The translations under genes and the position numbers were made by a program. From Macrostomum lignano (Eukaryota), in contig NIVC01000426.1 of assembly GCA_002269645.1 (NCBI GenBank), positions 372,001 through 436,000 of the forward strand: a DNA stretch of 64,000 nucleotides. The letters are read 5' to 3'. The stretch's first letter is position 1. The number at the start of each line of letters is the position of its first letter. This document shows positions 12,059 to 61,766 of this stretch, one piece after another. Under the pieces are notes generated by a model. The model saw nothing but the letters and a program-made list of their open reading frames with translations, was not told the DNA's origin and searched no databases.

Positions 12059-15000
12059 ATGTCTCCCTCCTACCTGATGCAGCACTGCGGCCAGCGAATT
12101 CTCGTGACAGGCCTCCGCAGCGGCGGTCGGCCACCCCAGCCGGCGCTGATTCTGCTACGAAATCTGTCTCGACGTCGGCTAACTTCGCCGAAGTCCACTT
12201 ATTCGTCAAGCAGCAGTTCCTCGACGTCAACTAGCAGCGCTGGCAGGCGGCTGATCCGCGGCGGAGTCACCTGCGCCGGGCTCGGACTGGCGACCTTCGC
12301 TGTTGGCCGGGTGTCCCTGTACGAGCGGCTCAAGGGTGAGGGGCGGAATGTCTTCACTGTCCTGTGCATTACTGACACTGTCCTGTGCATTACTGACACT
12401 GTCCCATGCATTACTGACACTGTCCTGTGCATTACTGACACTGTCCTGTGCATTACTGACACTGTCCTGTGCATTACTGACACTGTCCTATGCATTACTG
12501 ACACTTTTCCATGCATTACTGACACTGTCCCATGCATTACTGACACTGTCCTGTGCATTACTGACACTGTCCTGTGCATTACTGACACTTTTCCATGCAT
12601 TACTGACACTGTCCCATGCATTACTGTCACTGTCCCATACATTACTGACACTGTCCCATGCATTACTGACACTGTCCCATGCATTACTGTCACTGTCCTG
12701 TGCATTACTGACACTGTCCCATGCATTACTGACACTGTCCCATGCATTACTGTCACTGTCCCATGCATTACTGTCACTGTCCTGTGCATTACTGACACTG
12801 TCCCATACATTACTGACACTGTCCCATGCATTACTGACACTGTCCCATGCATTACTGTCACTGTCCCATGCATTACTGTCACTGTCCTGTGCATTACTGA
12901 CACTGTCCCATACATTACTGACACTGTCCCATGCATTACTGACACTGTCCCATGCATTACTGTCACTGTCCTGTGCATTACTGACACTGTCCTGTGCATT
13001 ACTGACACTGTCCTGTGCATTACTGACACTGTCCTGTGCATTACTGACACTGTCCTGTGCATTACTGACACTGTCCCATGCATTACTGACACTGTCCTGT
13101 GCATTACTGACACTGTCCTGTGCATTACTGTCACTGTCCCATGCATTACTGACACTGTCCTGTGCATTACTGACACTGTCCTGTGCATTACTGTCACTGT
13201 CCCATGCATTACTGACACTGTCATATGCATTACTGTCACTGTTCCAATCGATAATTTCAGGAACGGCAGGCGGTCTGATTGGTGACGGCGGCCTGGACGT
13301 CCGGCGCTGGTTGCCAAGCGATTGGCGCCACTATCCCATGCACGCCTACGCACTGATTGGAGTCAATGCAATTGTTTTCCTGCTGTGGCAGCTGCCAGCC
13401 GCTCGGCCTGTGCTGAACCGCTGGGCAATGCTGTGGCCTAGCCGGCTTGGCCCCCTGTCGCTCATTGGATCCATGTTCAGTCACCAGCACTGGCTGCACC
13501 TGCTAGTTAACATGCTTGTACTGCACAGTTTTGCACCGGCTCTGACAGCTCAGTTGGGATCTCCCGAAGAGTTCCTCTGTCTGTACGCCTGCTCGGGTGA
13601 GGCTTCTGCTGAATTTTTTATCTATATATTATCTTTTTGTTTCAGCATAATTATTAAACTTTGCACTGACTTTACAATCACTTTAAAGCAAAGCCTCCCT
13701 TCAGGTTCTTCTAACTCTTTCATGGCCTACCATCAACTCCCAATTGTTTCTTAGCATCTTAGCAATCCCCCATGAGCCTGGACATCTCAGCAATCCCCCA
13801 TGAGCCTGGACATCTCAGCAATTCCCCCATGAGCCTAGACATCTCAGCAATTCCCCCATGAGCCTGGACATCTCAGCAATCCCCCATGAGCCTGGACATC
13901 TCAGCAATTCCCCCATGAGCCTAGACATCTCAGCAATTCCCCCATGAGCCTGGACATCTCAGCAATCCCCCATGAGCCTGGACATCTCAGCAATTCCCCC
14001 ATGAGCCTGGACATCTCAGCAATCCCCCATGAGCCTGGACATCTCAGCAATTCCCCCATGAGCCTGGACATCTCAGCAATCCCCCATGAGCCTGGACATC
14101 TCAGCAATTCCCCCATGAGCCTAGACATCTCAGCAATTCCCCCATGAGCCTTGACATCTCAGCAATTCCCCCATGAGCCTAGACATCTCAGCAATTCCCC
14201 CATGAGCCTTGACATCTCAGCAATTCCCCCATGAGCCTTGACATCTCAGCAATTCCCCCATGAGCCTGGACATCTCAGCAATTCCCCCATGAGCCTTGAC
14301 ATCTCAGCAATTCCCCCATGAGCCTGGACATCTCAGCAATTCCCCCATGAGCCTTGACATCTCAGCAATTCCCCCATGAGCCTTGACATCTCAGCAATTC
14401 CCCCATGAGCCTGGACATCTCAGCAATTCCCCCATGAGCCTGGACATCTCAGCAATTCCCCCATGAGCCTGGACATCTCAGCAATTCCCCCCATGAGCCT
14501 GGACATCTCAGCAATTCCCCCATGAGCCTGGACATCTCAGCAATTCCCCCCATGAGCCTGGACATCTCAGCAATTCCCCCCATGAGCCTGGACATCTCAG
14601 CAATTCCCCCCATAAGCCTGGACATCTCAGCTATTCCGTCTCCAAGATATTTATTTATAAAATATCAATAAGCAGCTCAGTGGTAAACGCGGAACTCTCG
14701 CGCCACGACCCCTGGTTCGATTCGGTGCGTGACCACATCAATTTACCGTGAGGGTGTCATGATGTTGTGTTGTTTTGTGTACAGTATTGGCGAGCTTGAA
14801 TGTGCTCAGCAGTCAGTGGAATAGGCAGAATTGCCTCAGCTCTGCTAGGGTGTCCACAGCACTCCTGCAAATATGTATCACGAATGTATGAATGTCTGAT
14901 ATAGCAGCTGAGGAGAACGTCTGACAAAGCAGATAATACTCGTAGTAGGCTTGTGATGAAGGCGCCTCAATTTAAAAGTTGATATTTAAATGTCGGTATG

Positions 15001-19487: not shown

Positions 19488-22050
19488 CTAGGGTGGCTGC
19501 ATAGTATCGTCCTGGCTCGGCTCATCAATAGCACCCTTGTAGATGCGGTTCGGTCCAAGGACACTATCCGCGCCAGACATGGACTCAACCGCAGGAAATG
19601 GCCGACTAGACACCATCGGAGTTGATGTCGCTATTCCTCCCGAGCATTCGGCATCATCTGCTAGCCCTGTTCCGTAGGGTCGCTTGCCGATCAGTTCTTG
19701 AATGCGATCGTCCAGCGACCTCATTCGCCTTTCGATGCTCTGCTGAGAAGAGCTCGGCGATTCCGACCCACCGTCCGGTGTACCCGGCGCCCTGCTAGAC
19801 AACTCTGCGTCTGCAGTTGTTAATGAGCTGTAGCTCTCAACAAACTGATGAGGCTCGCCCAGCTGCTTAGCTCTGGCGTCCAGCAGTGCAATCTGACTAT
19901 TGATCATCTTTCTGGATGCCGCATCTAGCCAATGGCTTGCGGAGACATTGTTGCGTCTGTCCGAACAGTCTTGAGGCTCTGTGGCCAGGCCTTGGCCGCA
20001 GACGCAACAAAGGCTGTCCGAAGCCAGATCTACGGCATTTGGCCTGTTGTCCAGGCGGCCGATTCTAGCATTCAATTTGTCCAATCTGTCTAGAAGTAGT
20101 CGCACCTCGGATCTGCTGTGCTGCAGCTCTTTGGCTAAATTGGCATTGGCTTGTTGGAGTCGGCTATTCTCTGCAGTCAGTGACTTTATCTGGTCAATTA
20201 GGGACTGGATTTCTCTGTCCTTGTCCTTCAGAGATGACAACCGGTCTGCTCTACCACCGCTTTCTATTGGCGATTCACGACGCTCGGTGACTTGGGCCTG
20301 TTGGAAGTTGAGAAAGTTGGTTTATTCTTCGTCGGGTCCTCTTCCTCCTCTGTTACTGAGGTTGGTCCTCTTCTTTCTCTCTGTCACTGAGGCTGGTCCT
20401 CTCCCTCCCTTCTGTCACTGAGGTTGGTCCTCTCCCTCCCCTCTGACACTGAGGCTGGTCCTCTCCCTCCCTTCTGTCACTGAGGTTGGTCCTCTCCCTC
20501 CCCTCTGACACTGAGGCTGGTCCTCTCCCTCCCCTCTGTCACTGAGGCTGGTCCTCTCCCTCCCTTCTGTCACTGAGGTTGGTCCTCTCCCTCCCTTCTG
20601 TCACTGAGGTTGGTCCTCTTCTTTCTCTCTGTCACTGAGGCTGGTCCTCTTCTTTCCCTCTGACACTGAGGTTGGTCCTCTTCTTTCCCTCTGACACTGA
20701 GGTTGGTCCTCTTCTTTCTCTCTGTCACTGAGGCTGGTCCTCTTCTTTCTCTCTGTTACTGAGGTTGGTCCTCTTCTTTCTCTCTGTCACTGAGGCTGGT
20801 CCTCTCCCTCCCTTCTGTCACTGAGGTTGGTCCTCTTCTTTCTCTCTGTCACTGAGGCTGGTCCTCTCCCTCCCCTCTGACACTGAGGTTGGTCCTCTTC
20901 TTTCTCTCTGTCACTGAGGCTGGTCCTCTCCCTCCCTTTTGTCACTGAGGTTGGTCCTCTTCTTTCTCTCTGTCACTGAGGCTGGTCCTCTCCCTCCCTT
21001 TTGTCACTGAGGTTGGTCCTCTTCTTTCTCTCTGTCACTGAGGTTGGTCCTCTTCTTTCTCTCTGTCACTGAGGCTGGTCCTCTCCCTCCCTTCTGTCAC
21101 TGAGGTGGTCCTCTCCCTCCCCTCTGACACTGAGGTTGGTCCTCTTCTTTCTCTCTGTCACTGAGGTTGGTCCTCTTCTTTCTCTCTGTCACTGAGGCTG
21201 GTCCTCTCCCTCCCTTCTGTCACTGAGGTTGGTCCTCTCCCTCCCCTCTGACACTGAGATTGGTCCTCTTCTTTCTCTCTGTCACTGAGGCTGGTCCTCT
21301 CCCTCCCCTCTGACACTGAGATTGGTCCTCTTCTTTCTCTCTGTCACTGAGGTTGGTCCTCTTCTTTCTCTCTGTCACTGAGGCTGGTCCTCTCCCTCCC
21401 TTCTGTCACTGAGGTTGGTCCTCTCCCTCCCCTCTGACACTGAGATTGGTCCTCTTCTTTCTCTGTCACTGAGGTTGGTCCTCTTCTTTCTCTCTGTCAC
21501 TGAGGCTGGTCCTCTCCCTCCCTTCTGTCACTGAGGTTGGTCCTCTCCCTCCCCTCTGACACTGAGATTGGTCCTCTTCTTTCTCTCTGTCACTGAGGCT
21601 GGTCCTCTCCCTCCCTTTTGTCACTGAGGCTGGTCCTCTCCCTCCCTTTTGTCACTGAGGTTGGTCCTCTTCCTCCTCTGTTACTGAGGTTGGTCCTCTT
21701 CTTTCTATCTGTCACTGAGGCTGGTCCTCTCCCTCCCTTTTGTCACTGAGGCTGGTCCTCTCCCTCCCTTTTGTCACTGAGGTTGGTCCTCTTGTTTCCT
21801 TTTGTCACTGAGGTTGGTCCTCTTCCTTCCATCTGTCACTGAGGTTGGTCCTCTCCCTCCTCCCTTTCTCTGAGGTTAGTCCTCACTAAAAACGCCAAGT
21901 AGAAAACCTGACCTGCTGCCCTGAGCCAACAACAGCTTGAAGCGAAGTTTCCTCATCAGTGGGGATGATGTTGCCAGCGCCGCTGCTTCCGCTGCCTTCG
22001 TTTCCATGGGTGATGCCATCTGACCTCGTTTGCTCACCAGGATTTTCCAT
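19488..22050 (-). CDS. Uncharacterised coiled-coil protein (about 315 aa); exons 22050..21913 and 20297..19488
   Basis: ATG exon MENPGEQ...GSGQQ (46 codons) ends at CAG|GTCAGG. Acceptor TTCCAACAG|GCC is phase 0 and leads into the long ORF with heptads (EIQSLIDQIKSLTAENSRLQQANANLAKELQHSRSEVRLLLDRLDKLNARI). No family recognised. Confidence 0.7.
20335..21885 (+). repeat. 31-bp pyrimidine-rich tandem repeat (CACTGAGGTTGGTCCTCTTCTTTCTCTCTGT / CACTGAGGCTGGTCCTCTCCCTCCCTTCTGT) in the coiled-coil gene intron
   Basis: Direct observation; two interspersed monomer variants. Confidence 0.95.
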
Positions 22051-22224: not shown

Positions 22225-22526
22225 GGTGGTTGTAGCTTAGTGGATAGAGCGTCGGACTCGCGACTTGAAGGTCGGAGGTTCGATTCCCAATCCCACTGGG
22301 ACAATTTGTGTCCTTGAGCAAGACACTTAGCTATGCATTGCTTCAGTTCACACTGCTGTAAAATGGGTGCCAGCATTAGCTGGGGTAATTGAGGCTGTGT
22401 GTGTGGCGATCCTCAGTCCTTGGACTGAACAACCATATAATAGCTGCGGCTCAGCTGTCAATTGCACATCTGGCCCAATCGGGCCAGGAGTCATTAATTA
22501 TCAATACTAATAATTATTATTATTAT
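22225..22526 (+). mobile_element. tRNA-derived CORE-type SINE, copy 2
   Basis: Colinear with 831..1144 (A/B boxes, CORE, (TAT)n tail), with a short internal deletion in the 3' part. Confidence 0.8.
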
Positions 22527-24076: not shown

Positions 24077-27000
24077 ATGTTGCATCTGCGGCCGAATCTG
24101 ACCCCACTGCTGCTCCTGCTAATCACTGCTCTGATGTCGGACGCTCAATCACCAAGTCCGCCTCCTAGTGGCGGCGGCAGCTCCATGCTGGAGTTGCTGA
24201 TGCGAATGCGGAACCCCGACGATGGCAGCGGCAGCGGTGTCGGAAACAGCAGCGGCAGCGCCTCCGACAGCGTGATCTCGCGCTACATGGCGAAAATGCG
24301 CACCAGAGGAGCCAACGGCAACAGCAGCAGCAGCGGCAGCAGCAGCAGCGGCCGCGTCGGCAAGGGCCATCCTGATTTCGACTCGAGCTACCTGAGCAGC
24401 ATCCAAAAGGTTACGGGCGGCAACGATGAATCAGTGGTGCAGTATGGCTTGTTCGTGTACAGCAACTACCAAGGATTTCTGGCGTGAGTCCTAGTGAAAT
24501 ATTGATTGCCAGTAGTTAGAGGACTTTAAATCTGTAGAAGCTTCCTGTAAGGCTCGCGGCTTCAAATGATATTTTCAATTTTTAATGCCTCGCTGAACTC
24601 GAGAGAAGACTAATTTTCTTCAGCGACGAAGTTGAGGGATGAGATGAGGCTCGCTGAGATTGAGGCTCGCTTCTCTGCGCTTCCGTGACATCGAATTTTG
24701 TTACTTCTCGCTCATTTTTCTTCCCATCCTATCTGTAAACAAGGCGGCGGCGGCGGCAATCAGGCCTCTGCATGCACTTTCTAGGCCCGCCCACGCAACG
24801 ACTCTCTGCAGGCTGTGCGACCTTAGCCAGGCGCACTGGCAAGCTAAATTATGTTCTCCAGTCATTTGCCGGCTAGCCAGCCAATTCGAATGGACTGACG
24901 CAAAACCGGGATATTTTTATCATGAATTGTCTGTCCATGCTTCTTTAGTCTGTGATTATATTATAATCTTCATGAAACCCTTTCCTCCCCTTCTTCTCCT
25001 CTCAGTCTCACAGCAACCTCGCACCCTGCCCTTTCCTCTCCCCTCAGTGTCACAGCCACTTCACTCCCTGCCCTTTTCTCTCCCCTCAGTGTCACAGCCA
25101 CTTCACTCCCTGCCCTTTCTTCTCCCCTCAGTGTCACAGCCACCTCACTCCCTGCCCTTTTCTCTCCCCTCAGTGTCACAGCCACTTCACTCCCTGCCCT
25201 TTCCTCTCCCCTCAGTGTCACAGCCACCTCACACACTGCCCTTTCCTCTCCCCTCAGTGTCACAGCCACCTCGCACACTGCCCCTTTCTTCTCCCCTCAG
25301 TCTCACAGCCACCTCACTCCCTGCCCTTTCCTCTCTCCTCAGTCTCACAGCCACCTCACTCCCTGCCCTTTCCTCTCTCCTCAGTCTCACAGCCACCTCG
25401 CACACTGCCCCTTTCTTCTCCCCTCCAGTCTCACAGCCACCCCATGCTTTCACAGCGCGTTTCAAATTCTCAGCAACAGTCGCATATCATCTAATCTCTA
25501 CCCCGCCCCCGAACCCCAGTCCGTCGACCACCCCGCTGCAAGTGCAGGCGCACGTATCGCCGCTGCACCTGTCCCGACGGTCCGATCAGCAGCGGCAAGA
25601 CTCGCTGACAGCTCGCCTGACCCTGCGACTCTACTGGCGCGACGCCCGGCTGGCATTCAACAACACGCGCGTCTCTCGGGTTCAGCTGTACCATACATTT
25701 CTCAAAAAGTTATGGAAGCCGAGTATTCAGTTCTTAACCGCGACAGGCCAGCAGGACTTCGCGGTGGTCATGGCAACTGTGGATGCAGACGGTCTGGTTA
25801 CTCTGACGCAGCGTCTAAACGTGGGCTTGGAATGCGCTGAGAATCAGGTAGCATGATTTTAATTATTTTTCTATTATTTGTCTAGATAATTACCCCCTTA
25901 GAGAAGTGATTTTTGCTAAAACCCATGATTATTAAGACAAATAAGACCAACTCATAGGTGCAAATTCTACACAGGCCACTCATCCCTCAGTTTTAGCAGT
26001 CACCTCACGCCTTCCCCCACCCCCTAGTATTTGCAGCCACTTCACGCCTTCCCCCACCCCTCATTATTTGCAGCCACCTCACGCCTTCCCCACCCCTCAG
26101 TTTTTGCAGCCACCTCACGCCTTCCCCACCCCTCATTCCTTGCAGCCACCCACGCCTTCCCCAACCCCTCATTCCTTGCAGCCACCCCACGCCTTCCCCA
26201 ACCCCTCATTCCTTGCAGCCACCCCACGCCTTCCCCGACCCCTCATTCCTTGCAGCCACCCCACGCCTTCCCCCACCCCTCATTATTTGCAGCCACTTCA
26301 TGCCTTCTCCAACCCCTCAGTTTCTGCAGCCACCTCACGCCTTCCCCCACCCCTCATTCCTTGCAACCACCCCACGCCTTCCCCAACACCTCATTCCTTG
26401 CAGTCACCCCACGCCTTCCCCAACACCTCATTCCTTGCAGTCACCCCACGCCTTCCCCAACACCTCATTCCTTGCAGTCACCCCACGCCTTCCCCCCACC
26501 CCTCATTATTTGCAGCCACATCACGCCTTCCCCAACCCCTCATTCCTTGCATCGACCTTGCGCCTTCTCCTGCCAGAACTCTAGCTTTTGAAGTACAATA
26601 ACTAAATGTACATATCGGTAAAGCTTCAAGGCTAGATAAAAATCCAAACCCAATCCCTCAGCTGCACCTGCTCCCGCTGGACACTCTGAAGTGCGACGCA
26701 ACATTAAGCGTTAGCACCGCGTCCCAGTCTCAGCAAAAGCTCGACTGGTTACTGCCTGGCAACGCCTCTTTCAATTGGCCAATCGGCAGTCAGGTCAGCG
26801 ACTTGATTCTGACAGACGTGCAATTTCTGGACGGGAACGCTCGAGAGGAGATGGCCAGTCTGACGCTTCGGCTAAAATTGCGCCGTCAGTTGGCGCGCTT
26901 CTTGGTTGCCGCCTACGCGCCTAGCGCGCTGCTTGTGGCGCTGTCGGCTTGCAGCTTGCGCTCCGGCCGGTCCGGCATGTGCGCCGGCTGCGCTGCTGGC

Positions 27001-27989: not shown

Positions 27990-28713
27990 CAGATGAGGCA
28001 GAGGCTGTGTACCAAATAGGGGACGTCAAGTAGCCTCTTAGGAAGGCCGCTGCAACCGCTAGTTGTGAAATTTTTTCTGCAAAATGCATCTATATCAAGA
28101 TTAGGAAGTTTTCAGCTTTGAACAAATGATCACTGTTCCTATTTTAGTGAGAGCCCATTAAAAGCTCCGAAACTTCCTATCTTACTACTGCATTATGCAA
28201 GCAAGAACAAGACAAGAACTGGAAAAGGCTTTTCTCTATCCATTTTCTAGAAACTAATCATTTCTATTTGTTTTAACTCGTTAAACATCCTCCCGAAGTC
28301 CCGTCCGACTGTTAACGAACGGCGTACCGACCCCGATTTCTCCGAGGAACAGAGGGAAACCTAATTTTGTTATTTACGAGTAACTTAACAACGAATTTCG
28401 CAATAAAAGTGGCAGTTGGATTATCGCGATCATTGACAGTTCGAATAATTTGATATAAGTTACAAACCCTAGCAACAATCAATTGGCTGCATGATGAAGG
28501 CCTTAGTTATTAATTGTTTAACTTAAGGTTGTGCAAGTGTACAAGGTCTACTAAAGCTTGAAGTTTCTGTCCAAGCCAAGAGCGGGGTCCCCTACCTCAA
28601 CGTGGAGAAGATGGCCGCCACAAGACTCCGCATCGTCTGCTGGAAGGCGAGAGTTCGCCTAAGCAAAAATGCAGCTGATCAATTGCTACTATCAATTTTC
28701 TTTGATTTCTAAG

Positions 28714-28863
28714 ATGCGCAGATCCTTGCTGTACTGCAGCGCAAGGCCTACGCGTGGACCAGGTCGTGTGAACACGATGCACTGGCCCGACTCATCAAAA
28801 ACCGGATTAATTACTTGGTAGACCAATGGCCTACGTTAGAGGAATTAATCTCTAAAGAACAGA
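28714..28863 (-). pseudogene. RNU2: U2 snRNA 3' part (from TCTGTTCTT to the 3' end), distal copy
   Basis: Minus strand: TCTGTTCT, stem IIa TTAGAG-ATTAATTC-CTCTAA, CG, stem IIb TAGGCC-ATT-GGTCTA, stem IIc partner AATTAATC, Sm-like GGTTTTTGA, stem III GGGCCAG..TCGTG-TTCA-CACGA..CTGGTCC, stem IV GCGTAGG-CCTTG-C-GCTGCAGTAC-AG-CAAGG-A-TCTGCGC with the conserved YGCAGUAC loop. Confidence 0.88.
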
Positions 28864-30380
28864 GCGAAAGGCCCTGCCCGTCGGCCGAGTATCCGACGGT
28901 CGGGCAATATATTTAAGTATTTAAACGATGCGATATGAGCGGAAATATTTGGCCAAGAGCCTGATGATGCTACTGAGAGTAGCTAAAAACGGGTTCGCAG
29001 GATGCGTAAAACAGTAAAACATTGAAGTAAATGCAATTAAAACAGTGGGAAAAAGTGAAGGCGCAGGAGACGGGGTGGCGGCGGGGATGAGCGCGAGAGG
29101 CGGAATCACAGCGAAAAGTGCTAACAGAGTGCATGAACTTCGAGACAGTAAAAAGTAAAATATTAAAGAAAAACAAAGTAAAACAAAAATGCAGAGTGGA
29201 AGATAAATAAAACAGGTAAAAGTAAAGGTAACAGGGTGGGCTGAGATGAGCAGAGTTTGGCAGAGTTCGGCACAAAATCAGTGGATTTGAGGTGCGCCGG
29301 TGCAGTGCTCCACCCACGTGTTGCGGCTCCAGTGGATGCAGTGCAGCGCCAGTCGTCGTTGGAGGTGCCGGATGTCGCGCTCGCGCAGGCCTGCAGCGCG
29401 CAGGATGGCGCTGTTGAAAGGCGACCAGGCGCCCAGCGAGCCGATGCAGAAAGTAGCCAGGGCCGTTGGCGCCTCTGCGCTGAGCTGCTGCGTGATGCCG
29501 GCGTACTTCTGGCATACGGCTCGGTGCTTGCGTGGGAACGTGGCCGGCCCGACCTCGAACGGCGACTTGACTTCGATCAGGAGACGGCGGCCTCTGTCTG
29601 GATCCATGATGCTGATGTCAGGTCGCAGATCAGAGCCGGGAAGGACCTCCTGGTCGGTGGTGATGGTCGCGTTTGGGCGGGCCTCGCTGATGGCGGTGGC
29701 GACGGCGTTGACGATGCCGTCGTGGCGGTCCCTCCACCTGGCCGCGTGCACCGGGCAGCTGTTGATGACGTGGCCGAGCGTCTCGACGCCGGCTCCGCAG
29801 CGGCGGCATCGCGGGTCGGATGTCGGGTCGGCCAGTCTCCGGAGCGCGTTGGTGGGCACCAGGTTGAGCCGCGCTCGGTGGATGAAGCGCCAGTCGCAGG
29901 CGCGCATGCCGGTGCTGCTGAACAGCCAGGTGTGGCTGCCGATGTGCGTGGCAGTCGTGGCGCATCGGCCTTGGGAGTGGCACCCGCGCCAGGCCGCCGT
30001 GTGCGCTGCCCTGACCACCTGGTGAAGCCTCCGGGTGATTGCTGCCGCTCTGTCACAGCGCTGGATTGTTCCGGACAGCGGGTCGCGCCACTCCAGGCTG
30101 GCCGTCCAGTCGTTGCTGATGGTGAAGCGCAGCCCGGTCGCGTGGAGCACTTCGCGGGTGGCGTGGCGGACTTGGAACCACCAGCTGGCCGTTTCTCCGC
30201 TGGGTGGCAGTGCTGCGCCATTGAGGAAATCGGCGACGTCGCGAGGTCGGACAGGTGCAGCCCGGAGCCGTAGGCGGCGTTGGACCAGACCGCGCAGTTC
30301 GGCCCAGGCTAGCTCTCTGAGCGCGGCGTCGGTGCAGCAGAGTCGCCTGACGGCCTCGGTGACCTTCTGGACGGCTGCCT
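28864..30380 (-). mobile_element. 5'-truncated non-LTR retrotransposon with restriction-like endonuclease (NeSL group, Utopia-like), copy B
   Basis: The ORF ending at 29278 encodes a CCHC knuckle (CRRCGAGVETLGHVINSC), RHDGIV, PD-(D/E)xK endonuclease (LRPDIS...IEVKSPF), KY and GSLGAW. A T-rich 3' UTR of about 410 nt ends exactly at U2 TCTGTTCTT. Confidence 0.88.
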
Positions 30381-30473
30381 CAAGACTCCGCATCGTCTGC
30401 TGGAAGGCGAGAGTTCGCCTAAGCAAAAATGCAGCTGATCAATTGCTACTATCAATTTTCTTTGATTTCTAAG

Positions 30474-30632
30474 ATGCGCAGATCCTTGCTGTACTGCAGC
30501 GCAAGGCCTACGAGCCGTACGCGTGGACCAGGTCGTGTGAACACGATGCACTGGCCCGACTCATCAAAAACCGGATTAATTACTTAGTAGACCAATGGCC
30601 TACGTTAGAGGAATTAATCTCTAAAGAACAGA
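30474..30632 (-). pseudogene. RNU2: U2 snRNA 3' part, proximal copy (carries a 9-nt insertion at the base of stem IV)
   Basis: Nearly identical to 28714..28863, with one substitution and an extra GAGCCGTAC (+ strand) near 30512..30520. Confidence 0.88.
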
Positions 30633-31833
30633 ACGAAAGGCCCTGCCCCTCGGACGAGCTACCGAGAGTGGGGGCAATATATTTAAGTATTAAAGGAAAT
30701 TAGTAGGCGAGGACAGATGATTGTAAAGGCGACGGCGAGCGAGGGCTCATGCAAAAGAAATAGAGCGGCGAAAGTTAAAGCAAATTGAGCAGAATAAAGC
30801 GTTTCAAAAGAATTTTAGAAGACAACGGGAAGCGGGATAAAAAGGGGAGTGGCAGTAAAAGCAGACGAAAACAAAAGGATGAAATAAAAAAGAAATAAAA
30901 TAAAATAGACCAAAATGGATAAAAAAAAAAGGATGGGTGAGAGAGTATTAAATGCAAAATAGATAAATGAGATATAAAGGTGGTGAAAACAGGCGCGGAC
31001 GTCCCAAAAGGAGCAACGGGCAATAATTAGGGTCAGAAAGCGCGGAGACCCAAAACGGTCAGGCGAAGGCACAGGCACAGGTGCATCAGAAAGCTTGCGG
31101 GGCGCCCGTGCAGTGCTCCACCCACGAATTGCGGCTCCAGTGGATGCAGTGGAGCGCAAGCTGGCGCTGGAGGCTGCGAATGACGCGCTCGGCGAGCCCG
31201 GCCGCACGCAGGATGGTGTTGTTGTGCGGCGACCAGGAGCCAAGCGCTCCGACACAAAGAGTCGCCAGGGCCGTAGGTGCGTCCTCCTTCAGCCGCTGGG
31301 TCAGGCCAGCGTATTTCTCGCAGACGGCCCGGTGCTTACGCGAATAGGTAGTCGGGCCGGCCTCCATCGGTGTCTTGACTTCGATCAGCAGGCGCCGTCC
31401 TCGAGCCGGGTCCTCGACGCTGATGTCGGGACGGAGGCCAGAACCAGGCAGCACCTCCTGATCGTTGAGCACCGTCGCAGTCGGACAGGCCTTCTGGATG
31501 GCACCGGCGATCGCGCTGACGACGCCGTCGTGGCGGTCTCTCCATCGTCCCGCATGCACAGGGCAGGCGCTAAGGACATGACCGAGGGTCTCCGCCTCAG
31601 CGCCGCATCGCCTGCAGCGGGCGTCGGCTGTCGGGTCAGCGAGCCGCCGCGTCACATTCGTTGGAATGAGGTTGAGGCGGGCGCGATGTACGAAGCGCCA
31701 GTCACACACGCGCATCCCGGTGCTGTTGAACAGCCAGGTGTGCCCGCCGATGTGTGTCGCCGTCGTCGCGAAGCGGCCCTGGGAGCGGCATTGGCGCCAC
31801 GCCGATGTGTGCGCCGATCTGACGACCTCGTGC
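30633..31833 (-). mobile_element. 5'-truncated Utopia-like RLE retrotransposon, copy A (a different subfamily from B)
   Basis: The ORF ending at 31086 encodes CRRCGAEAETLGHVLSAC, RHDGVV, LRPDIS...IEVKTPM and GALGSW. The 3' UTR of about 450 nt ends at U2 TCTGTTCTT, and the 5' end abuts the U2 5' fragment. Confidence 0.88.
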
Positions 31834-31842
31834 AGCCAATAA

Positions 31843-31872
31843 TGATCTTAGCCAATAAGGCCGAGAAGCGAT
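31843..31872 (-). ncRNA. RNU2: U2 snRNA 5' end (nt 1-30) of the interrupted gene
   Basis: Minus strand reads ATCGCTTCTCGGCCTTATTGGCTAAGATCA, against canonical U2 ATCGCTTCTCGGCCTTTTGGCTAAGATCA. Confidence 0.92.
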
Positions 31873-32282: not shown

Positions 32283-32613
32283 GGGTTGGTTTCAACTTCA
32301 CAACCGCTAAAAATTTTGCACATACTTTCATATACTGCAGTCTTTTTAGCGGTTGTGAAGTTTCGCGGTTATGAAGTTTCGCGGTTGTGAAAGTAGATGA
32401 CTTTAGCGGTTGTGAAGTTTCGCGTTTGTGAAGTTTCGCGCTTATGAAAGTGGGTGATTTAGCGTTGTGAAGTTTCGCGTTTGTGAAGTTGCGCGTTTAT
32501 GAAAGTGACTGCAAAAAAATTAGCGGTTGTGAAGTTTCGCGGTTATGAAGTTTCGCGGTTGTGAAAGTAAATGATTTAGCGGTTGTGAAATTTCGCGTTT
32601 GTGAAAGCAACCC
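32283..32613. mobile_element. MITE with 12-bp TIR (GGGTTG[G/C]TTTCA), 8-bp TSD GTCCCGCA and internal GCGGTTGTGAAGTTTC subrepeats
   Basis: TSD at 32275..32282 and 32614..32621. An inverted subterminal motif (CTTCACAACCGCTAA) lies near the left end. An 8-bp TSD fits hAT or Merlin. Confidence 0.82.
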
Positions 32614-33420: not shown

Positions 33421-33573
33421 TGTGATTTCCTTGTTTTTCCTACAAACAAGCAAGATTTTCATTTTTAGTATATGGATGTAATATGACTTCACACGAAATC
33501 TTCATTTTTATTTACTGGTACAGTGTACATTTATCCCCTTTAGGACATACTAGCGATCGACATACTACTTAAG

Positions 33574-33751
33574 TTTAATTAATTGATTACACCTGCCCAA
33601 TTGGGCCGGATGTGCAACCGACAGCTCAGCCGCAGCTATTGCGCGGCGCATCTGAAGGCTGCGTACGGCTGTTCAGTCCAAGATTGGGTCGAGAATCGAA
33701 CCCCCAACCTTTCAGTCGTGAGTCCGACACTAAACACTAGGCTACACCCCC
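33574..33751 (-). mobile_element. tRNA-SINE copy 3, internally deleted (no CORE domain)
   Basis: The minus strand joins the tRNA head (…GGTTCGATTCTCGACCC) directly to the 3' part (…CTTGGACTGAACAGCCGTACGCAGCCTTCAGATGCGCCGCGCAATAGCTGCGG…). Confidence 0.78.
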
Positions 33752-34246
33752 GAAAACTACTATGAGTAGGCGGTAACTGACGATTGCGAAAAACGGAATT
33801 ACCATGTTTCGAAATCGGTTCTTAGCGCAGAAAACTGCGATTTTAAAACACAAAGTGCCGTAGAGTTTATTATCACTGTTTTAAATATGCTATTTTGATT
33901 TTTAAAATTCAATTATCAAGTGCAACACAACATCATCATGAAAGCTACATGGTACGCTTACGACCAAACGTAGGGCTAACAAAAACTTCGGTAACAAGAG
34001 AAACTCTGATGAGAGAGTAAAAATGCCAAGAGGAATGGGGCGCAGGGAGTCGCGTTACGCAATCTTGGAGACTGTTTTAGAATTTTTATATACTTAAGCG
34101 CGTACATAAAATAAAGTAGACGATTATGATAATTACAATAAAATATTACAGTAATATCTCCACATCGTTACCGCTACTAACAGTAGTCATTATAAGTTTC
34201 GCAGATTTTTAAGTCAAGAAGAGACTGCATGCCTCATCTCTCCAGT

Positions 34247-36690
34247 TCAATCAACCTCCTCCATCTTGGCGTCGTCGTCAGCGGCAGCCGAGTCGCCAGC
34301 AGTGGCTGGCATCGGCTGATCGACAGCTTCGGGTTCGTCGGCGGCGTCCTCAATGCCAAGGCCCAGCTTCACCATGCGATGGATGCGGCCGGCGTGGATC
34401 TGCGGATCGTCCAAGCTGAAGCCGGAGGCCAGCAGGGCGGTCTCGAACAGCAGGTGCACCAGATCCTTCACCGCCTTGTCGTTCTTGTCAGCCTCGAAGC
34501 GCAGCTTGAGAGCGGAGCAGATGGCGTGGTCAGGGTTGATCTCCAGGTGCTTCTTAGCCGCCATGTAGCCCATTGTGGAGTTGTCGCGCAGAGCCTGAAA
34601 TTGGTTTTGTTGGTAAAAATTCACGGTTATATCTTAATTGCTAAAACACCGATTTATCTGAAAACTACTAGCAGTAGTTTTAAGGACTAAAATTTGACAA
34701 AATAGATCGAGTTCACCTACCTGTGCCTTCATGATCCGCTCCATGTTGGCCGACCAGCCGAACTGCGAGGTGACGATGCAGCAAGGCGAGTCAACCAGCC
34801 GGTTGGACACGACCACCTTCTCGACCTTCTTGTCCAGGATGTCCTTCATAGCCTTGCACAGCGGCTCGAAGGCGGCCTTCTTTTCTTCGAACGCTTTCTT
34901 CTCGTCCTCGTCCTCGGGCAGCTCAAGGCCCTCCTTGGTGACGCAGACGAGCTTCTTGCCGTCGTACTCGCGCAACTGCTGCACAGCGTACTCGTCGATT
35001 GGGTCAGTCATGTACAGCACCTCCAGGCCGCGCTTTCGCAGTCTCTCAACAAATGCGGAGTGAGAGACGGCCTCCCGGCTCTCGCCGGTGATGTAGTAGA
35101 TGTCCTTCTGGTTCTCCTTCATGCGGCTGACGTACTCCTTCAGGCTGGTCCAGTCGTCGCCGGAGTTGGTAGAGTAGTAGCGCAGGTAGTCGGCCAGCTT
35201 CTTGCGGTTGGTGCTGTCCTCGTGGATGCCCAGCTTCAGGTTCTTGCCAAACTGCTCGTAGAACTTCTTGAAGTTCTCCTTGTCCTCGGCGATGTCGTCG
35301 AACAGTTCCAGGCACTTCTTCACGAGATTCTTTCGAATGACCTTGAGGATTTTGTTCTGCTGCAGCATCTCACGGCTGATGTTGAGCGGCAGGTCTTCGC
35401 TGTCCACTACGCCCTTGATGAAGTTGAGGTACTCGGGGATCAGGTCCTCGCAGTTGTCCATGATGAAGACCCGTCGCACGTACAGCTTGATGTTATTACG
35501 CTTCTTCCGGTTCTCGAACAGGTCGAACGGCGCCCGCTTCGGGACAAAAAGCAGGGCGCGAAACTCGAGCTGGCCCTCAACGCTGAAGTGCTTCACGGCC
35601 AGGTGCTCCTCCCAGTCGTTGCTGAGCGACTTGTAAAACTCGCCGTACTCCTCCTGGGTGATGTCCTCGTGGTTGCGGGTCCAGATTGGCTTCGTCTTGT
35701 TCAGCTCCTCCTCGTCGATGTACTTCTCCTTGACAGTCTTCTTCTTTTTCTTCTTCTTGTCCTTCTCCGAGTCGCTGCCTTCGTCGTCGCTGCTTTCGTC
35801 GTCCTCGATCTTCGGCTTGTCGGTCTCGTCGGACTTCTCGTCGGCCGGCTTCTCGGAGTCTTCGTCCATCTTCTCAGGCTTTGAGTCCTCCTCAACTTCG
35901 GCTTCATCGTCTTCAATCTGGAAATGAAGGAATGTTACCGACAGGTGAGATCATTGAACGATTAACAGGATGCCGACACACTAATTAATTGTCTCTTGAC
36001 TGATCAACTTACCTCCTTATCGCGCTCCTTCTCGAGCACCAGCTTGATAGGATAGCCGATAAACTGGGAGTGCTTCTTGATGATCTCCTTGATCTTGCGC
36101 TCCTCCAGGTACTCGGTCTGGTCCTCCTTCATGTGCAGGACAATCTTGGTGCCGCGACCAATGGGTTCGCCAGTGTCGGGCCGGACGGTGAAGCTGCCGC
36201 CGGCGGAGGACTCCCAGGCGTACTGCTCGTCGTCGTTGTGCTTGGAGTAGACCTCAACCTTGTCGGCCACCAGGTAGGCCGAGTAGAAGCCAACGCCGAA
36301 CTGGCCGATCATGCTGATGTCAGCGCCCGCCTGCAGCGCCTCCATGAACGCCTTGGTGCCAGATCTGGCGATGGTGCCCAGATTGTTAACTAGATCAGCT
36401 TTAGTCATGCCGACTCCGGTGTCAACGATGGTCAGGGTGTTGTTAGCCTTGTTGGGGATCACCTTGATGTACAGCTCTCGGCCGGTGTCCAGCACGGACT
36501 GATCCGTCAGGCTTCTGTACCGAATTTTGTCCAAGGCGTCGCTGGCATTCGAGATCAACTCGCGGAGGAAGATCTCCTTGTTCGAGTAGAAGGTGTTAAT
36601 AATTAAGCTCATCAGCTGAGCGATCTCAGCCTGAAAAGCAAAAGTCTCCACCTCCTGCTGCTGGTTGATTTCGACCTCGTTGATAGTCAT
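34247..36690 (-). CDS. HSP90: Cytosolic heat shock protein 90 (Hsp83/HSP90A), 740 aa; exons 36690..36013, 35917..34721, 34594..34247
   Basis: [54 protein letters not shown], the charged linker and a C-terminal MEEVD. Both introns are phase-0 GT-AG. Confidence 0.98.
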
Positions 36691-38448: not shown

Positions 38449-38704
38449 GCCTTGTGATTAGAGGGTCGGACTGATGACTGAAAGGTCTGGGGTTCGATTC
38501 TCGACCCACTCGGAACAATTTGTGTCCTTGAGCAAGACACTTAACTCTGCATTGCTTCCAGTTCAACCAGCTGTAAAAAGAGTGTCAACATTAGCTGGGG
38601 CAATTGAGGGTGTGTGGCGACCCCCCCCCAGACTTTGGACTGAACAACCGTATAATAGCTGCGGCTGAGCTGTCGGTTGTAGTCAATTATTATTATATTA
38701 TTAT
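38449..38704 (+). mobile_element. tRNA-derived CORE-type SINE, copy 4 (slightly 5'-eroded)
   Basis: B box GGTTCGATTCTC, CORE GTGTCCTTGAGCAAGACACTTAAC...CTGTAAAAAG, shared 3' region and (TAT)n tail. Confidence 0.8.
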
Positions 38705-39561: not shown

Positions 39562-42500
39562 TCAGAGCATATCATCGCTCCACTGGAACGGCTCCGGCGG
39601 CGGCGGCTCCGGCAGGTCGTCCTCTTTTGAGTTCGCCGAAGTTGGGCCGTGCGCCTTCACGGTTGGCACCAGGGACTCCTTCTCGTCTGGCCGACGGTCG
39701 CGCAGCATTATAATGCCGCCAATGGTGACGCTCTTCACCGGCTGGTAGCGGCCGCCTTCAAGCGTCACGAGACGCTGCTGGGCTCGCATAACCCGGCACG
39801 GATTGGACAGCAGGCTAAAGTTTGGCTCGGGCCCGGGCTTGTCCGTTGAGGTGCCAGTAGAAACTGTGGCGGGCTTATCAGTCAGGGTTCCCTGGCTCTT
39901 CGAAGCCGGCGCCGGCTCCTTTGTTGACGTCTCAGTTGAGGCGGCGGCGGCGGGGGCGGCAGCGGCTGTGGTGGCACTGGAAGTCTCGCTACTGGCTGGA
40001 GTCTCCTTGCCCTCCGGGATTGACGGAACTGGAGCGGCGGCGGGGCCAGAAGCCGAAGTTGCAGTCGCAGCAGCCGCAGTTGTGGAGCCGCCCGGCTGAT
40101 GAGCCGTAGCTGCCGCTGTTTTCTTCTTCTCCTGCTCCTTGCGCTTCTGCTTGGCCGTGATGCTGAGCACGGCGGTCTCGACTTTTTCTTTCTTCTTCTC
40201 CACCTGGGTCACTGAATATGGCAAAGGGAATTGCGCGATAGATTTTTAAACTGTGGCCCAACGCATTCACTACCTATAAGCCAATCCCTGAACTCAACAC
40301 ACACCTGTAAACCAATCCCTGAACTCAACACACACCTGTAAACCAATCCCTGAACTCAACACACACCTGTGAACCAATCCCTGAACTCAACACACACCTG
40401 TAAACCCATCCCTGAACTCAACACACACCTGTAAACCAATCCCTGAACTCAACACACACCTGTAAACCAATCCCTGAACTCAACACACACCTGTGAACCA
40501 ATCCCTGAACTCAACACACACCTGTAAACCCATCCCTGAACTCAACACACACCTGTAAACCAATCCCTGAACTCAACACACACCTGTAAACCAATCCCTG
40601 AACTCAACACACACCTGTAAACCAATCCCTGAACCCAACACACACCTGTAAACCAATCCCTGAACCCAACACACACCTGTAAACCAATCCCTGAACCCAA
40701 CACACACCTGTAAACCAATCCCTGAACCCAACACACACACCTGTAAACCAATCTCTGAACCCAACACACACCTGTAAACCAATCCCTGAACTCAACACAC
40801 ACCTGTAAACCAATCCCTGAACTCAACACACCTATAAACCAATCCCTGAACTCAACACACCTATAAACCAATCCCTGAACTCAACACACCTATAAACCAA
40901 TCCCTGAACTCAACACACCTATAAACCAATCCCTGAACTCAACACACCTATAAACCAATCCCTGAACTCAACACACACCTATAAACCAATCCCTGAACTC
41001 AACACACACCTATAAACCAATCCCTGAACTCAACACACCTATAAACCAATCCCTGAACTCAACACACCTATAAACCAATCCCTGAACTCAACACACACCT
41101 ATAAACCAATCCCTGAACTCAACACACCTATAAACCAATCCCTGAACTCAACACACCTATAAACCCATCCCTGAACTCAACACACCTATAAACCAATCCC
41201 TGAACTCAACACACCTATAAACCAATCCCTGAACTCAACACACCTATAAACCAATCCCTGAACTCAACACACCTATAAACCCATCCCTGAACTCAACACA
41301 CCTATAAACCAATCTCTGAACTCAACACACCTATAAACCCATCCCTGAACTCAACACACACCTATAAACCAATCCCTGAACTCAACACACCTATAAACCC
41401 ATCCCTGAACTCAACACACCTATAAACCCATCCCTGAACTCAACACACCTATAAACCCATCCCTGAACTCAACACACACCTATAAACCAATCTCTGAACT
41501 CAACACACACCTGTAAACCAATCCCTGAACTCAACACACACCTGTAAACCAATCCCTGAACCCAACACACACCTGTAAACCAATCCCTGAACCCAACACA
41601 CACCTGTAAACCAATCCCTGAACCCAACACACACCTGTAAACCAATCCCTGAACCCAACACACACACCTGTAAACCAATCTCTGAACCCAACACACACCT
41701 GTAAACCAATCCCTGAACTCAACACACACCTGTAAACCAATCCCTGAACTCAACACACCTATAAACCAATCCCTGAACTCAACACACCTATAAACCAATC
41801 CCTGAACTCAACACACCTATAAACCAATCCCTGAACTCAACACACCTATAAACCAATCCCTGAACTCAACACACCTATAAACCAATCCCTGAACTCAACA
41901 CACACCTATAAACCAATCCCTGAACTCAACACACACCTATAAACCAATCCCTGAACTCAACACACCTATAAACCAATCCCTGAACTCAACACACCTATAA
42001 ACCAATCCCTGAACTCAACACACCTATAAACCAATCCCTGAACTCAACACACCTATAAACCAATCCCTGAACTCAACACACCTATAAACCCATCCCTGAA
42101 CTCAACACACCTATAAACCAATCCCTGAACTCAACACACCTATAAACCAATCCCTGAACTCAACACACCTATAAACCAATCCCTGAACTCAACACACCTA
42201 TAAACCCATCCCTGAACTCAACACACCTATAAACCAATCTCTGAACTCAACACACCTATAAACCCATCCCTGAACTCAACACACACCTATAAACCAATCC
42301 CTGAACTCAACACACCTATAAACCCATCCCTGAACTCAACACACCTATAAACCCATCCCTGAACTCAACACACCTATAAACCCATCCCTGAACTCAACAC
42401 ACACCTATAAACCAATCTCTGAACTCAACACACACCTGTAAACCAATCCCTATACTCAACACACACCTGTAAACCCATCCCTGAACTCAACACACACCTG

Positions 42501-45500
42501 TAAACCAATCCCTGAACTCAACACACACCTGTAAACCCATCCCTGAACTCAACACACACCCGAGAAACAAATCCCTGAAACCAAGACCCCTTAAAACCGA
42601 ATCTAAAATACGCGTAACTTTTATCTTAAAATTAATTAGTTCAAAAACTGACCCAGAGGCGGCGGATAATCGAAGGTGCTGGGCTTAGCATTGGAGCGGA
42701 ACTGAACCTGCGGCATTTCCAATGCCTTATTTAGCCCAATCAGGCTGGTAGGCGTGAAGGCCAGGCAGAGGAAATGCGTCAAAGGATACCAGTACCAGAA
42801 CTGCTGGAACACCAGGACGCCAACAGCGGCGGCCATGTTAGACTGGCCAGTCCGGGTCTGCAGGCTGATGGTGACATTGCGACCTCCGGCATCAACAATG
42901 CCAAGGCCGAGAATGGCGCCATGCTTAGCCATCACGTCTTCGTGCTTGTCGGCCACTACTTTTAGGCAGAGTTCGCGAAATTCGCCAGCCTTCGGACTGT
43001 TGACACCGTTCTGTTGGATTAGCACCATGCCCAGCGCGATTAGGGCGCCTTGGCGGACAAAGTGCACAGCGTCCTGCGTCATGGGATCAAGGATGTTGAT
43101 AGCCTCCTTGAGCGCGGTGCCGGCGCAAGCGATGCCCAGAGCCATGGCGGCGCCGTAGCGAACGTGCGGGTTGAATGATTCGGCTAGGAGGGACACGAGG
43201 TCCGGCACCTGAGTGGGGAGAGTGAGGCATTAATATCTAAAGTAGGCTACTCATAGTAGAATGAGTCGGACAGTGCTAAATATATGTTAATATTGAAAAT
43301 CTAAGGGTCTAAATAGACTTCTTAGCGCCACATCGGCCTCTATTTTTCTAAAGCGCCTACTTCTATTGTGGCTTCTAGGGCGCCAAATCGGCCTGTTGGG
43401 ATCTAGGGCACCAAAATAACCTTTTGGGATGGGATCTAAGGCGCCGAATTGGTCTAGGGGTCTAGGGCGCCGAATTGATCTAGGGGTCTAGGGCGCCGAA
43501 TTGGTCTGTTTGAATGGGATCTAGGGCGCCGAATTGGCCTGTTTGAATGGAATCTAGGGCGCCGAATTAGCCTGTTGGGATCTAGGGCGCCGAGTTGATC
43601 TAAGGGGTCTAGGAGGCCAAATTGGCCTGTTTAAATGGAATCTAGGGCGCCGAATTAGCCTGTTTGAATGGGATCTAGGGCGCCGAATTGGCCTGTTTGA
43701 ATGGGATCTAGGGCGCCGAATTGGCCTGTTTGAATGGGATCTAGGGCGCCGAATTAGCCTGTTGGGATCTAGGGCGCCGAATTGGCCTGTTTGAATGGGA
43801 TCTAGGGCGCCGAATTAGCCTGTTGGGATCTAGGGCGCCGAATTAGCCTGTTGGGATCTAGGGCGCCGAGTTGATCTAAGGGGTCTAGGAGGCCAAATTG
43901 GCCTGTTTAAATGGAATCTAGGGCGCCGAATTAGCCTGTTAGGATCTAGGGCGCCAAATTGGCTTGAAAGTTCTAGGGCGGCGAATCGGCCAGTGTGGTC
44001 TAGGAAGCCTAATGGATCCAATGGGTCTGGGGCGCTATCTTGGCCTGAGGGTTTCTAATTTCTCACAAAATAGGAAAATCCGGTCTTTAGGACTCTTTAA
44101 AAGAGTTCAGATGCACAAAATTGTCTATTGACTGACCTGTTCGGGCGATTTAAACAGCACAAAGCCGATGCTAAGCACGGCGGCCCGGCGAACATCGTCG
44201 CTAGTATCGGTGACGGCGTAGTGCAACAGGCGCCGGACAGCAGAATTCGAGCCCGAGCCGCAGTAGGCCATAGCAACAGTGTACACGCCGCTCCATCGCA
44301 GTATGGGATCTTTATCCTCTAGCAGGCTCTGGGCCAGCAGGTCGGCCTCCTCCAGCCGGCCGTACATAGTCAGAGCTACGCCAACAGCCAGGCCTCGGAT
44401 AATTTTATCGTGCTGAGTCTCCTTAGCGTAGGAGACCATGTCTTTAACGGCGGCCGAGCTGCTCGAGCCCAGCATTACTAGGCCCATAGCTAAGCCGGCC
44501 GCTTCGCCAACAATAGCATCGTCCTGGTATAGGCTCAGCTTAATAGCCTCGTAAACATCCTGCCTAGCCGTGCCCATAGCGGCCAGGCCCAGGCCCAGAC
44601 AGGCGCCGTGCCTGACTGGTTCAGCGGTGGCTCCGGACAGCTGCTGCAGAAGATAATCGGTCACAGCCGAGCCGTGATTGGCGTGGATCAGGCCCAGTGC
44701 ATATAGGCCGCCGCCCTCCGAATAGGCCGTGGTGCCGGCGCTATTCCTAGGCAGATAGGCGGCCATCAGACGAAGCGACTCGGTCTCGTGGCCCCGATGG
44801 ATACAGCCTAGGCTGGCCGTGGCGGCAAACTTAGCCCAGTTAGTTGCCCGGCCAAGCCACTCCAGATTGTCGCGCAGAAACTGATCGCTAGTGGTGCCGG
44901 CGTGCATGAAGCCGTTAGCGGTCACTGTGGCCGAGTGAGTGATGGAATTGCGCACAGATTCGCGCAGCCGGTCTAGGTAGCGCGCATCGGCTCGGTTATT
45001 ACGGATTAGAAATTGCAGGTGCAGTTGGATTACCTGCAAAGTTATCCAAGTAACAAATACTGACAATGAAACAAACTCAAGTCTACGAAGTTTGCCCGAT
45101 GACATTTGAAAGTCAGACATCTAACATCTAAAACGTCAGCCAGCTAGACGTTTGCCAGCTAGATGTTTGCCAGCTAGATGTTTGCCAGCTAGATGTTTGC
45201 CAGCTAGATGTTTGCCAGCTAACATTTGCCAGCTAGATATTTGCTTTTGCAAGCCAATTGCCAACCAACATAAGTAAAGAGCCAAACTATTGTAATAGAA
45301 AATCCAGCAAAAACGTCTTAACTAATCTAACTAGTAACTACTGATGTTTCCCTCAGCTAAGTAGTGCAACAGCAAGTCTACGTTAAGCTTAGTACACCTC
45401 CTTTATTTAAGAATTAATAGAACACAAAACCCTTCAGTTCCTACCTTCTCTCCCGATAGAATAGTCAACAATCTGGCGAATCTCTCTTTGGCAGCCTCGT

Positions 45501-61140: not shown

Positions 61141-61766
61141 CACTTTTTCAGAGATAGCAGGTCAGTGGAAGATGCACTGAGGCACTAAGTCGTGTAGCGC
61201 CATAAAAAGAAAAGGCTCCCAAGGCTCCAAGGAAGCGGTTGGTCTTGATTTTCGCACAAAAAGACACTGTGAATCGTTATGGAAATGCATGAACAGCAGA
61301 AGCAAGCAATCGGGTTTTTTCTTCTCTGGCTGCAAACTAGCAGCTGAAATATTGGCACATATCCGCTTAAATGGAGGCAGTCGCTGAATTTATAAAAAAA
61401 ACCAAGAAAACAAAGAATTCAAAGAATTTTCTGGACGAAAAAGCAAAGAAATGTTTTTATTCTGAACTTGCTTTATGAAATTCCGTGGCAAACTGCGAGC
61501 TTGGCAAGGCGGTGGAATTTGGGACTGGGTATAGATAATATACAGATTGGCAGTATGGCGGAACCAAAAATACTCTGCGTGAGACACCGCCACATTCTGT
61601 CAGTCAATTTTGGCACCCAATATAAATGGCATTGTGTACGCCTTGTTATTATTGGAATGTTGGCAGAAAACGTTTGCTTTTCTGCAGAGGATTTTGAGGG
61701 GATGGCACACAGGTGCAAGCTCTATTCCCTGCTTTGTGGGACCACGTGGCACTTGCTATAGCCAGA

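Follow-up and report, generated by a model that had tools for sequence, protein, structure and literature searches.

The locus described here combines parts of a U2 small nuclear RNA (snRNA) gene with two 5'-truncated retrotransposons that are very probably of the Utopia type. It lies on the minus strand of a 64-kb stretch of DNA (contig NIVC01000426.1, positions 372,001 to 436,000), which was analyzed as a whole and is referred to here as the window, and has a Cys-loop receptor gene on one side and an HSP90 gene on the other. Reading of the sequence from 32600 down to 28000, together with an Rfam scan of the window, gave the minus-strand order U2 nt 1-30, a 9-nt filler, a first element (E1), U2 nt 39 to the end of the gene with 88 bp of flank, a second element (E2), and a repeat of U2 nt 39-end with the same flank (Table 1). 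All of the parts listed in a preliminary description of this stretch, which had been made from the sequence alone, were present at the coordinates given there. E1 ends in ...GGGCAGGGCCTTTCGT at 30633 and is followed by U2 TCTGTTCTT from 30632, so that ...CCTTTCGT is joined to TCTGTTCTT between 30633 and 30632. E2 ends in ...GGGCAGGGCCTTTCGC at 28864 and is followed by U2 TCTGTTCTT from 28863, with ...CCTTTCGC joined to TCTGTTCTT between 28864 and 28863. Both termini are GGGCCTTTCG(T/C) directly abutting TCTGTTCTT, which is U2 nt 39 (TCTGTTCT...), and the insertion point that the two elements had been said to share is exact.

The U2 identity of the 5' fragment and of both 3' parts was borne out by the Rfam model RF00004. 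The 5' fragment (31872..31843) occurs a single time in the window and was matched in 0 of 100 shuffles, and the presumed U2 promoter lies immediately upstream of it, at coordinates higher than 31843..31872. The 5' junction of E1 lacks canonical U2 nt 30-38, nine nucleotides that include the branch-site-binding GUAGUA. Self-comparison and the Rfam scan found no second U2, no further copy of E1 or E2 and no repeat of the promoter-proximal region within the 64 kb, and no rRNA was found in the window by Rfam. This is a solitary U2 gene, with no visible tandem array around the locus. A 57-bp repeat array (TTTAGCGGTTGTGAAGTTTCGCG...) at 32345-32605 lies ~470 bp upstream of the U2 5' end.

Table 1. 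Parts of the U2 locus and other features of the window, with positions in the window and the basis of each assignment.
Feature	Position	Strand	Basis or remark
U2 5' fragment, ATCGCTTCTCGGCCTTATTGGCTAAGATCA	31843..31872	-	Aligns to RF00004 positions 1-29 with one additional loop base (nt 1-30 here; canonical nt 1-29)
9-nt filler, TTATTGGCT	31834..31842	-	Exact repeat of U2 nt 15-23; final bases GGCT overlap the E1 start
E1, upstream element (element A of the preliminary description), 5'-truncated, very probably Utopia-type	30633..31836	-	ORF, 3' UTR and U2 junction
U2 nt 39-end, upstream copy, 164 nt	30469..30632	-	Rfam RF00004 match 30658..30469, 61 bits
88-bp U2 3' flank, upstream copy	30381..30468	-	Identical to 28621-28708; self-comparison and pairwise alignment
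E2, downstream element (element B of the preliminary description), 5'-truncated, very probably Utopia-type	28864..30380	-	ORF, 3' UTR and U2 junction
U2 nt 39-end, downstream copy, 155 nt	28709..28863	-	Rfam RF00004 match 28889..28709, 79.2 bits; better model fit than the upstream copy
88-bp U2 3' flank, downstream copy	28621..28708	-	Similarity stops at 28621; unique sequence from 28620 downward
Conserved 3'-terminal module (in E1: AATACTTAAATATATTG, G+C-rich hairpin, GGGCAGGGCCTTTCG)	E1 30633..30694; E2 counterpart 28864-28924	-	84% identity over the last 62 columns
HSP90 gene, cytosolic, three exons	33990-36690	-	84% protein identity to Macrostomum lignano HSP90
RPN2/PSMD1 (26S proteasome subunit) exons	44125-46479	-	Best database identity 47%
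Cys-loop (neurotransmitter-gated ion channel) ligand-binding domain ORF	24660-25856	+	Probably a receptor-gene exon just downstream of the U2 locus
Long minisatellite arrays (15-45-bp units)	1474-9443, 12355-14637, 20335-21884, 40272-42579, 49879-51969, 54845-55791, 60182-61121, 61767-63281		
tRNA-like-headed, mutually similar segments	22226-22295, 833-1143, 22228-22500, 38449-38679, 33562-33749 (-)		Weak Rfam tRNA match, 31.9 bits

Both elements retain only the C-terminal part of their coding region. The open frame of E1 runs from 31841 to a stop codon at 31086 (251 codons, G+C-rich) and encodes a linker, a CCHC knuckle and a PD-(D/E)XK endonuclease, without a reverse transcriptase (RT). That of E2 runs from 30380 to a stop codon at 29278 (367 codons) and encodes an RT-thumb/linker remnant, a CCHC and a restriction-like endonuclease (RLE). 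The motifs C-x2-C-x7-H-x4-C, RH, PD, (I/L)E V and K are found in both proteins, which could be aligned with the corresponding regions (thumb/linker, CCHC and RLE) of R2 proteins of solved structure, at E-values of 1e-30 (profile) and 4e-8 (single sequence). Pfam searches of the two open reading frames (ORFs) returned sub-threshold zf-RVT matches only, and no Pfam model captures this RLE. When RT-bearing relatives were used as tblastn queries, no remnant of an RT was detected in any part of the window, and both copies are therefore 5'-truncated and dead. Over 743 bp the coding parts of E1 and E2 share 74.8% DNA identity, with 75% identity between the proteins, and a gap-free alignment of 246 codons gave a synonymous divergence (dS) of 1.15 and a ratio of nonsynonymous to synonymous divergence (dN/dS) of 0.14. 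These values point to two lineages of ancient divergence that were both kept under purifying selection, in agreement with the two distinct lineages of the preliminary description. The peptides quoted there do differ between the elements, as was claimed, but were listed in the wrong order: NVTRRLADPTADA is from E1, the upstream one of the two.

The 3' untranslated region (UTR) of E1 is pyrimidine-rich (31085..30633, 453 nt) and has the terminus GGGCCTTTCGT; that of E2 (29277..28864, 414 nt) has the terminus GGGCCTTTCGC. The two UTRs share 84% identity in their final ~62 nt, and elsewhere ~54% in a gap-rich alignment, so that the earlier observation that they cannot be aligned except at the end holds, with a shared stretch slightly longer than the ~55 nt first given. 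The hairpin within this terminal module is retained in E1 and E2 alike, where one pair shows a compensatory change and another a G-U/G-C change. We interpret the module as the part of the element's 3' end at which recognition and priming take place. The hairpin is common to E1, E2 and an ant family; it is not general among the relatives and was dropped as a family trait. Rfam also aligned the 26 nt at the very end of E2 and of E1 (hairpin and GGGCCTTTCG; 28864-28889 and 30633-30658, minus strand) to U2 stem-loop I. The tail GGCCTTT of the elements resembles U2 nt 11-17, a likeness that may be due to chance and is a candidate for mimicry.

Utopia elements are RLE-bearing members of the NeSL clade whose 3' end is followed by U2 from nt 39 (Kojima & Jurka 2015, PMC4640811), and the Utopia junction given in the preliminary description was therefore correct. 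Target site, endonuclease type and protein homology together give good support for the membership of E1 and E2 in this group, and the earlier assignment to an RLE-bearing Utopia type stands, with site, motifs and U2-linked relatives in agreement. Protein relatives recovered from databases showed 30-43% identity only (spider, aphid and Logan contigs). In a spider contig (L004), a relative with C2H2 fingers, RT and RLE is followed by U2 nt 39-58 ~340 bp past its stop codon, and no Myb match was found in it with Pfam; N-terminal zinc fingers without a Myb domain serve as the criterion for Utopia in PMC13188248, to which this relative speaks only indirectly where E1 and E2 are concerned. The first three contigs fetched (L001-L003) contained no U2, and two of them end shortly past the ORF. 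Metagenome contigs scanned with the protein alignment yielded 64 loci encoding relatives. At least 20 of these 64 loci have a U2 that starts at nt 38/39, lies 150-850 bp past the ORF and is on the same strand as it, and the best-scoring loci with sufficient downstream sequence had a U2 junction in 10 of 11 cases. One metagenome relative (L012) shares 31% identity with E2 over residues 17-380 (364 residues, E 2e-36), and its 3' end matches a terminus that S1 Fig of PMC4640811 shows for an ant Utopia.

The preliminary description had also suggested a tree of the RLE domains. In our neighbor-joining tree of the C-terminal domain, which has no bootstrap and R2 as its sole outgroup, E1 and E2 are sisters, placed away from R2 and nested among the U2-linked relatives. 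Identity in this domain is 33-37% to U2-linked relatives vs 19-21% to two R2 proteins. With R2 (structures 9nl2, 9nl3, 9dou and 8gh6) the elements have in common the C-terminal architecture and presumably the mechanism of target-primed reverse transcription (TPRT), but in addition to this low identity they differ in target, which is U2 and not 28S. An R2 identity is excluded by the U2 flanks in place of the 28S rDNA site. Keno elements of the Tx1 clade have reached the U2 nt 39 site in parallel and have identical 3' flanking U2 sequence (PMC4640811). A Keno identity is nevertheless excluded by the C-terminal RLE, as the endonuclease of Keno is apurinic/apyrimidinic-like whereas E1 and E2 have an R2-homologous CCHC and RLE. 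An ordinary cluster of U2 pseudogenes is excluded by the element junctions.

In several respects E1 and E2 are like published Utopia elements. They have the U2 nt 39 junction (TCTGTTCTT), the C-terminal CCHC and PD-(D/E)XK RLE, 5' truncation, which is common in Utopia, and variable 5' junctions, and their protein identity to U2-linked relatives is 30-37%. The coexistence of several families in one genome, and even in one U2 locus or array, is also a Utopia feature: U2 arrays of Phytophthora hold several coexisting Utopia families (PMC4640811), and multiple families per genome have already been described in oomycetes, Ladona, Daphnia and Acyrthosiphon. The 3' terminus is different. In place of the A-rich ...TAA of arthropod relatives, E1 and E2 end in the G+C-rich hairpin and GGGCCTTTCG, a terminus that is absent from S1 Fig of PMC4640811.

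Another difference from published Utopia lies in the target. Target-site duplications reported for Utopia range from 0 to 20 bp, in contrast to the 243-bp duplication of U2 nt 39-end plus flank that brackets E2. The duplicated segments are 252 nt (upstream) and 243 nt (downstream) long, and pairwise alignment showed that they differ by one substitution and one 9-bp insertion, both in the upstream copy. The insertion, CGCGTA[CGGCTCGTA]GGCC, is bounded by CGTA repeats (30495-30515, minus strand) in the U2 3' stem region of the upstream copy only, and may have arisen by mutation after the insertion or as an error of reverse transcription. Similarity between the two segments stops at the start of E2. 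At this 5' junction, 8 of 10 nt of E2 match the native continuation of the flank (E2 GGCAGCCGTC, flank GGCGGCCATC); for E2 AGGCAGCCGTCC compared with native flank TGGCGGCCATCT, the empirical p was 3e-4 (8 of 10 matches) or 2e-3 (8 of 12). E1 can be aligned with E2 from about 31837.

The history that we prefer, with a probability of roughly one half, involves two hits, one after the other, and a long target-site duplication. By analogy with R2, the element endonuclease would nick the U2 antisense strand between nt 38 and 39, and the resulting 3'-OH would prime cDNA synthesis from the element 3' end, with its conserved hairpin and GGGCCTTTCG tail. TPRT from such a nick would leave every copy ending right before TCTGTTCTT. 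E2 may have come first. Synthesis on the E2 RNA would have aborted early, and the incomplete cDNA would have been joined, through the microhomology of 8 of 10 nt, to a sense-strand end ~243 bp downstream of the first nick. Fill-in would then have duplicated the interval between the breaks, U2 nt 39-end plus 88 bp of flank, as a long target-site duplication. This would have left, in order, an entire U2 gene and its 88-bp flank, E2, and a U2 3' stub. E1, from the second family, would later have hit the rebuilt gene at the same bond, with loss of nt 30-38, gain of the templated 9-nt filler and inactivation of the gene. In a variant of this history E1 would have been inserted first, followed by E2 into the E1-U2 half-site with the same long duplication, which requires that E2 was able to use a half-site.

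Several observations argue for the two sequential hits. The divergence of E1 and E2 rules out the duplication of a single insertion. The near-identical U2 3' parts and the shared non-U2 flank favor duplication in place over two separate genes, as do the host genes on both sides and the lack of any other U2 or promoter repeat in the window. The edges of the duplication coincide with the Utopia nick site on the left and the E2 5' end on the right, which is the geometry of a target-site duplication. There are also precedents. Utopia 5' junctions are variable, with target-site duplications that are absent in arthropods and 20 bp long in reptiles, and in Nasonia tandem Utopia copies occur at 20 of 94 3' junctions (PMC4640811). 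Among the metagenome loci, L032 has a comparable arrangement, a Utopia 3' end followed by U2 nt 39-66 (28 nt) and then a 5'-truncated Utopia (1600-1700). Other arrangements seen there were U2 nt 1-36 fused directly to a 5'-truncated Utopia (L073, 672-710), and an intact inverted U2 ~540 bp past a Utopia-U2 junction (L034, 4258-4834).

Other points weigh against this history. The 243-bp duplication far exceeds the range reported for Utopia and has no second example here: 21 metagenome loci showed no long direct repeat around their Utopia copies, the 5' ends of which are mostly outside the range covered. A single genomic locus was seen, the sequence of which does not tell which event came first. 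Both differences between the duplicated segments sit in the upstream U2 3' copy, which would also fit an error-prone, reverse-transcribed origin of that copy. As both copies are without RT, a position in the NeSL clade by RT phylogeny is putative. The preliminary description had summarized the locus as one U2 gene hit twice. Two elements at one nucleotide are indeed present, but the repeat of 243 bp was left uninterpreted there, and a double hit on a single gene is not established, as the rival explanations give the same sequence.

Improbable, although the likeliest of these rivals, is a single composite insertion, in which reverse transcription started at U2 nt 39 on E2 RNA and switched to a read-through transcript (E1, U2 and flank) of a paralogous or allelic locus, and the cDNA was joined to U2 nt 30. 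The gene would have been hit once, and the internal U2 3' piece would be reverse-transcribed. Template jumping is said to be a known property of R2-type reverse transcriptases, from work of the Eickbush laboratory. The tandem copies in Nasonia (PMC4640811) and the arrangement in L032 also fit a composite insertion, and an error-prone reverse transcription would be expected to leave both the substitution and the 9-bp insertion in the internal copy. The change to the target would be reduced to an ordinary 9-nt deletion. A paralogous donor is conceivable in view of the recent paralogues of Macrostomum-type genomes, since at least two HSP90 loci of M. lignano are near-identical. However, a donor locus with an identical 88-bp flank is required and none was seen, and Utopia read-through transcripts are an assumption only. 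In addition, the microhomology does not stop at the junction but includes part of the sequence that natively follows the flank, so that the switch would need an internal acceptor site and not an end-to-end jump.

Two neighboring U2 genes are an unlikely source of the same arrangement. In this case the gene and its flank would recently have been duplicated on the spot; a different Utopia would have been inserted at nt 39 of each copy, and a microhomology-mediated deletion would then have removed the spacer, the promoter and U2 5' part of the second gene, and the 5' part of E2. Many animals have their U2 genes in tandem repeats, and the microhomology at the junction is compatible with a deletion by end joining. 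The Phytophthora U2 arrays with their different Utopia families (PMC4640811) offer a parallel. This history nonetheless needs four events as opposed to two, and the locus stands amid single-copy host genes in a 64-kb window where no repeat unit was seen, neither another U2 nor a promoter repeat. The duplicated segment, moreover, begins exactly at nt 39 and stops exactly at the E2 5' end. An assembly artefact, in which two haplotypes or homeologues with different insertions in the same U2 gene were stitched in tandem, is very improbable: the region is repeat-rich, its U2 3' parts are near-identical and the M. lignano lineage includes polyploid species, but the flank-E2 junction is outside any shared repeat and bears a biological microhomology signature, and a collapse would not join the 88-bp flank to an internal point of E2.

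E2 might have spared its target, if the second-strand break fell past the 3' end of the gene and the ~243-bp duplication rebuilt a promoter-linked complete U2 with a dead 3' stub downstream, a proposal that we regard as unlikely. The duplication does provide a concrete case for a question posed in the Utopia paper, whether insertion destroys or duplicates the low-copy U2 target (PMC4640811). Phytophthora copies have intact U2 genes upstream of them and not nt 1-38 stubs, and a partial duplication of U2 by the insertion could not be excluded by the authors (PMC4640811). If the target-sparing mode were true and regular, it would explain three points raised in PMC4640811: the persistence of Utopia in a low-copy essential gene, the U2 3' stubs that outnumber intact genes, and the intact U2, in place of nt 1-38 stubs, upstream of the oomycete copies. 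A regular mode of this kind cannot be shown from a single truncated copy. The competition of two lineages for a small set of U2 targets, proposed in the preliminary description, goes likewise beyond what one locus can show.

The neighboring HSP90 gene gives an indication of the host. The spliced HSP90 of the window scored 1240 bits to human vs 909 bits to yeast and is metazoan, and its best match was M. lignano, with 84% amino acid identity vs 76-79% for other animals. HSP90 exon 2 has 91% DNA identity to two M. lignano loci, the intergenic DNA of which could not be aligned with the window; no U2 lies within 10 kb of either locus, and they yielded no orthologous empty site. Ten ORFs of the window and the spliced HSP90 had no exact counterpart in the collection searched. 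Together with the dense minisatellites of the window, these results indicate that the host is probably a macrostomid flatworm other than that of the deposited M. lignano assembly. The RPN2 exon had no Macrostomum match and carried no taxonomic signal, which is odd beside the HSP90 result.

Platyhelminthes are absent from the 2015 table of Utopia hosts (PMC4640811), and no later report of Utopia in flatworms was found, nor anything relevant in the literature on NeSL elements of Macrostomum or other flatworms. If the host assignment holds, the range of Utopia extends to Platyhelminthes. The NeSL-clade elements so far known from this phylum are the R5/LIN elements of planarians, which share with E1 and E2 the probable host phylum and, on the account of PMC4640811, presumably the broad clade, but have rRNA or tRNA genes and not U2 as their targets. 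Neither the type of element nor its target bond nor the presence of several families together is new; the novelties are the probable host phylum, the distinct 3' terminus and the 243-bp duplication. The findings concern one locus with two dead copies and are not those of a new kind of system. Two lineages separated by a dS of ~1.15 still cut U2 at an identical bond and provide comparative material on how an RLE reads its target. Tools for site-specific gene insertion give target recognition by RLEs a topical interest (PMC13580325).

The rest of the window is packed with minisatellites of 15-57-bp units, including an 8-kb array of a 28-bp unit, and these arrays create long spurious ORFs. An 'extensin-like' Pfam match at 61610-63292 was rejected as the product of a 15-bp repeat. 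The tRNA-headed segments (Table 1) probably represent a tRNA-derived family of short interspersed elements (SINEs), with at least four copies in the window.

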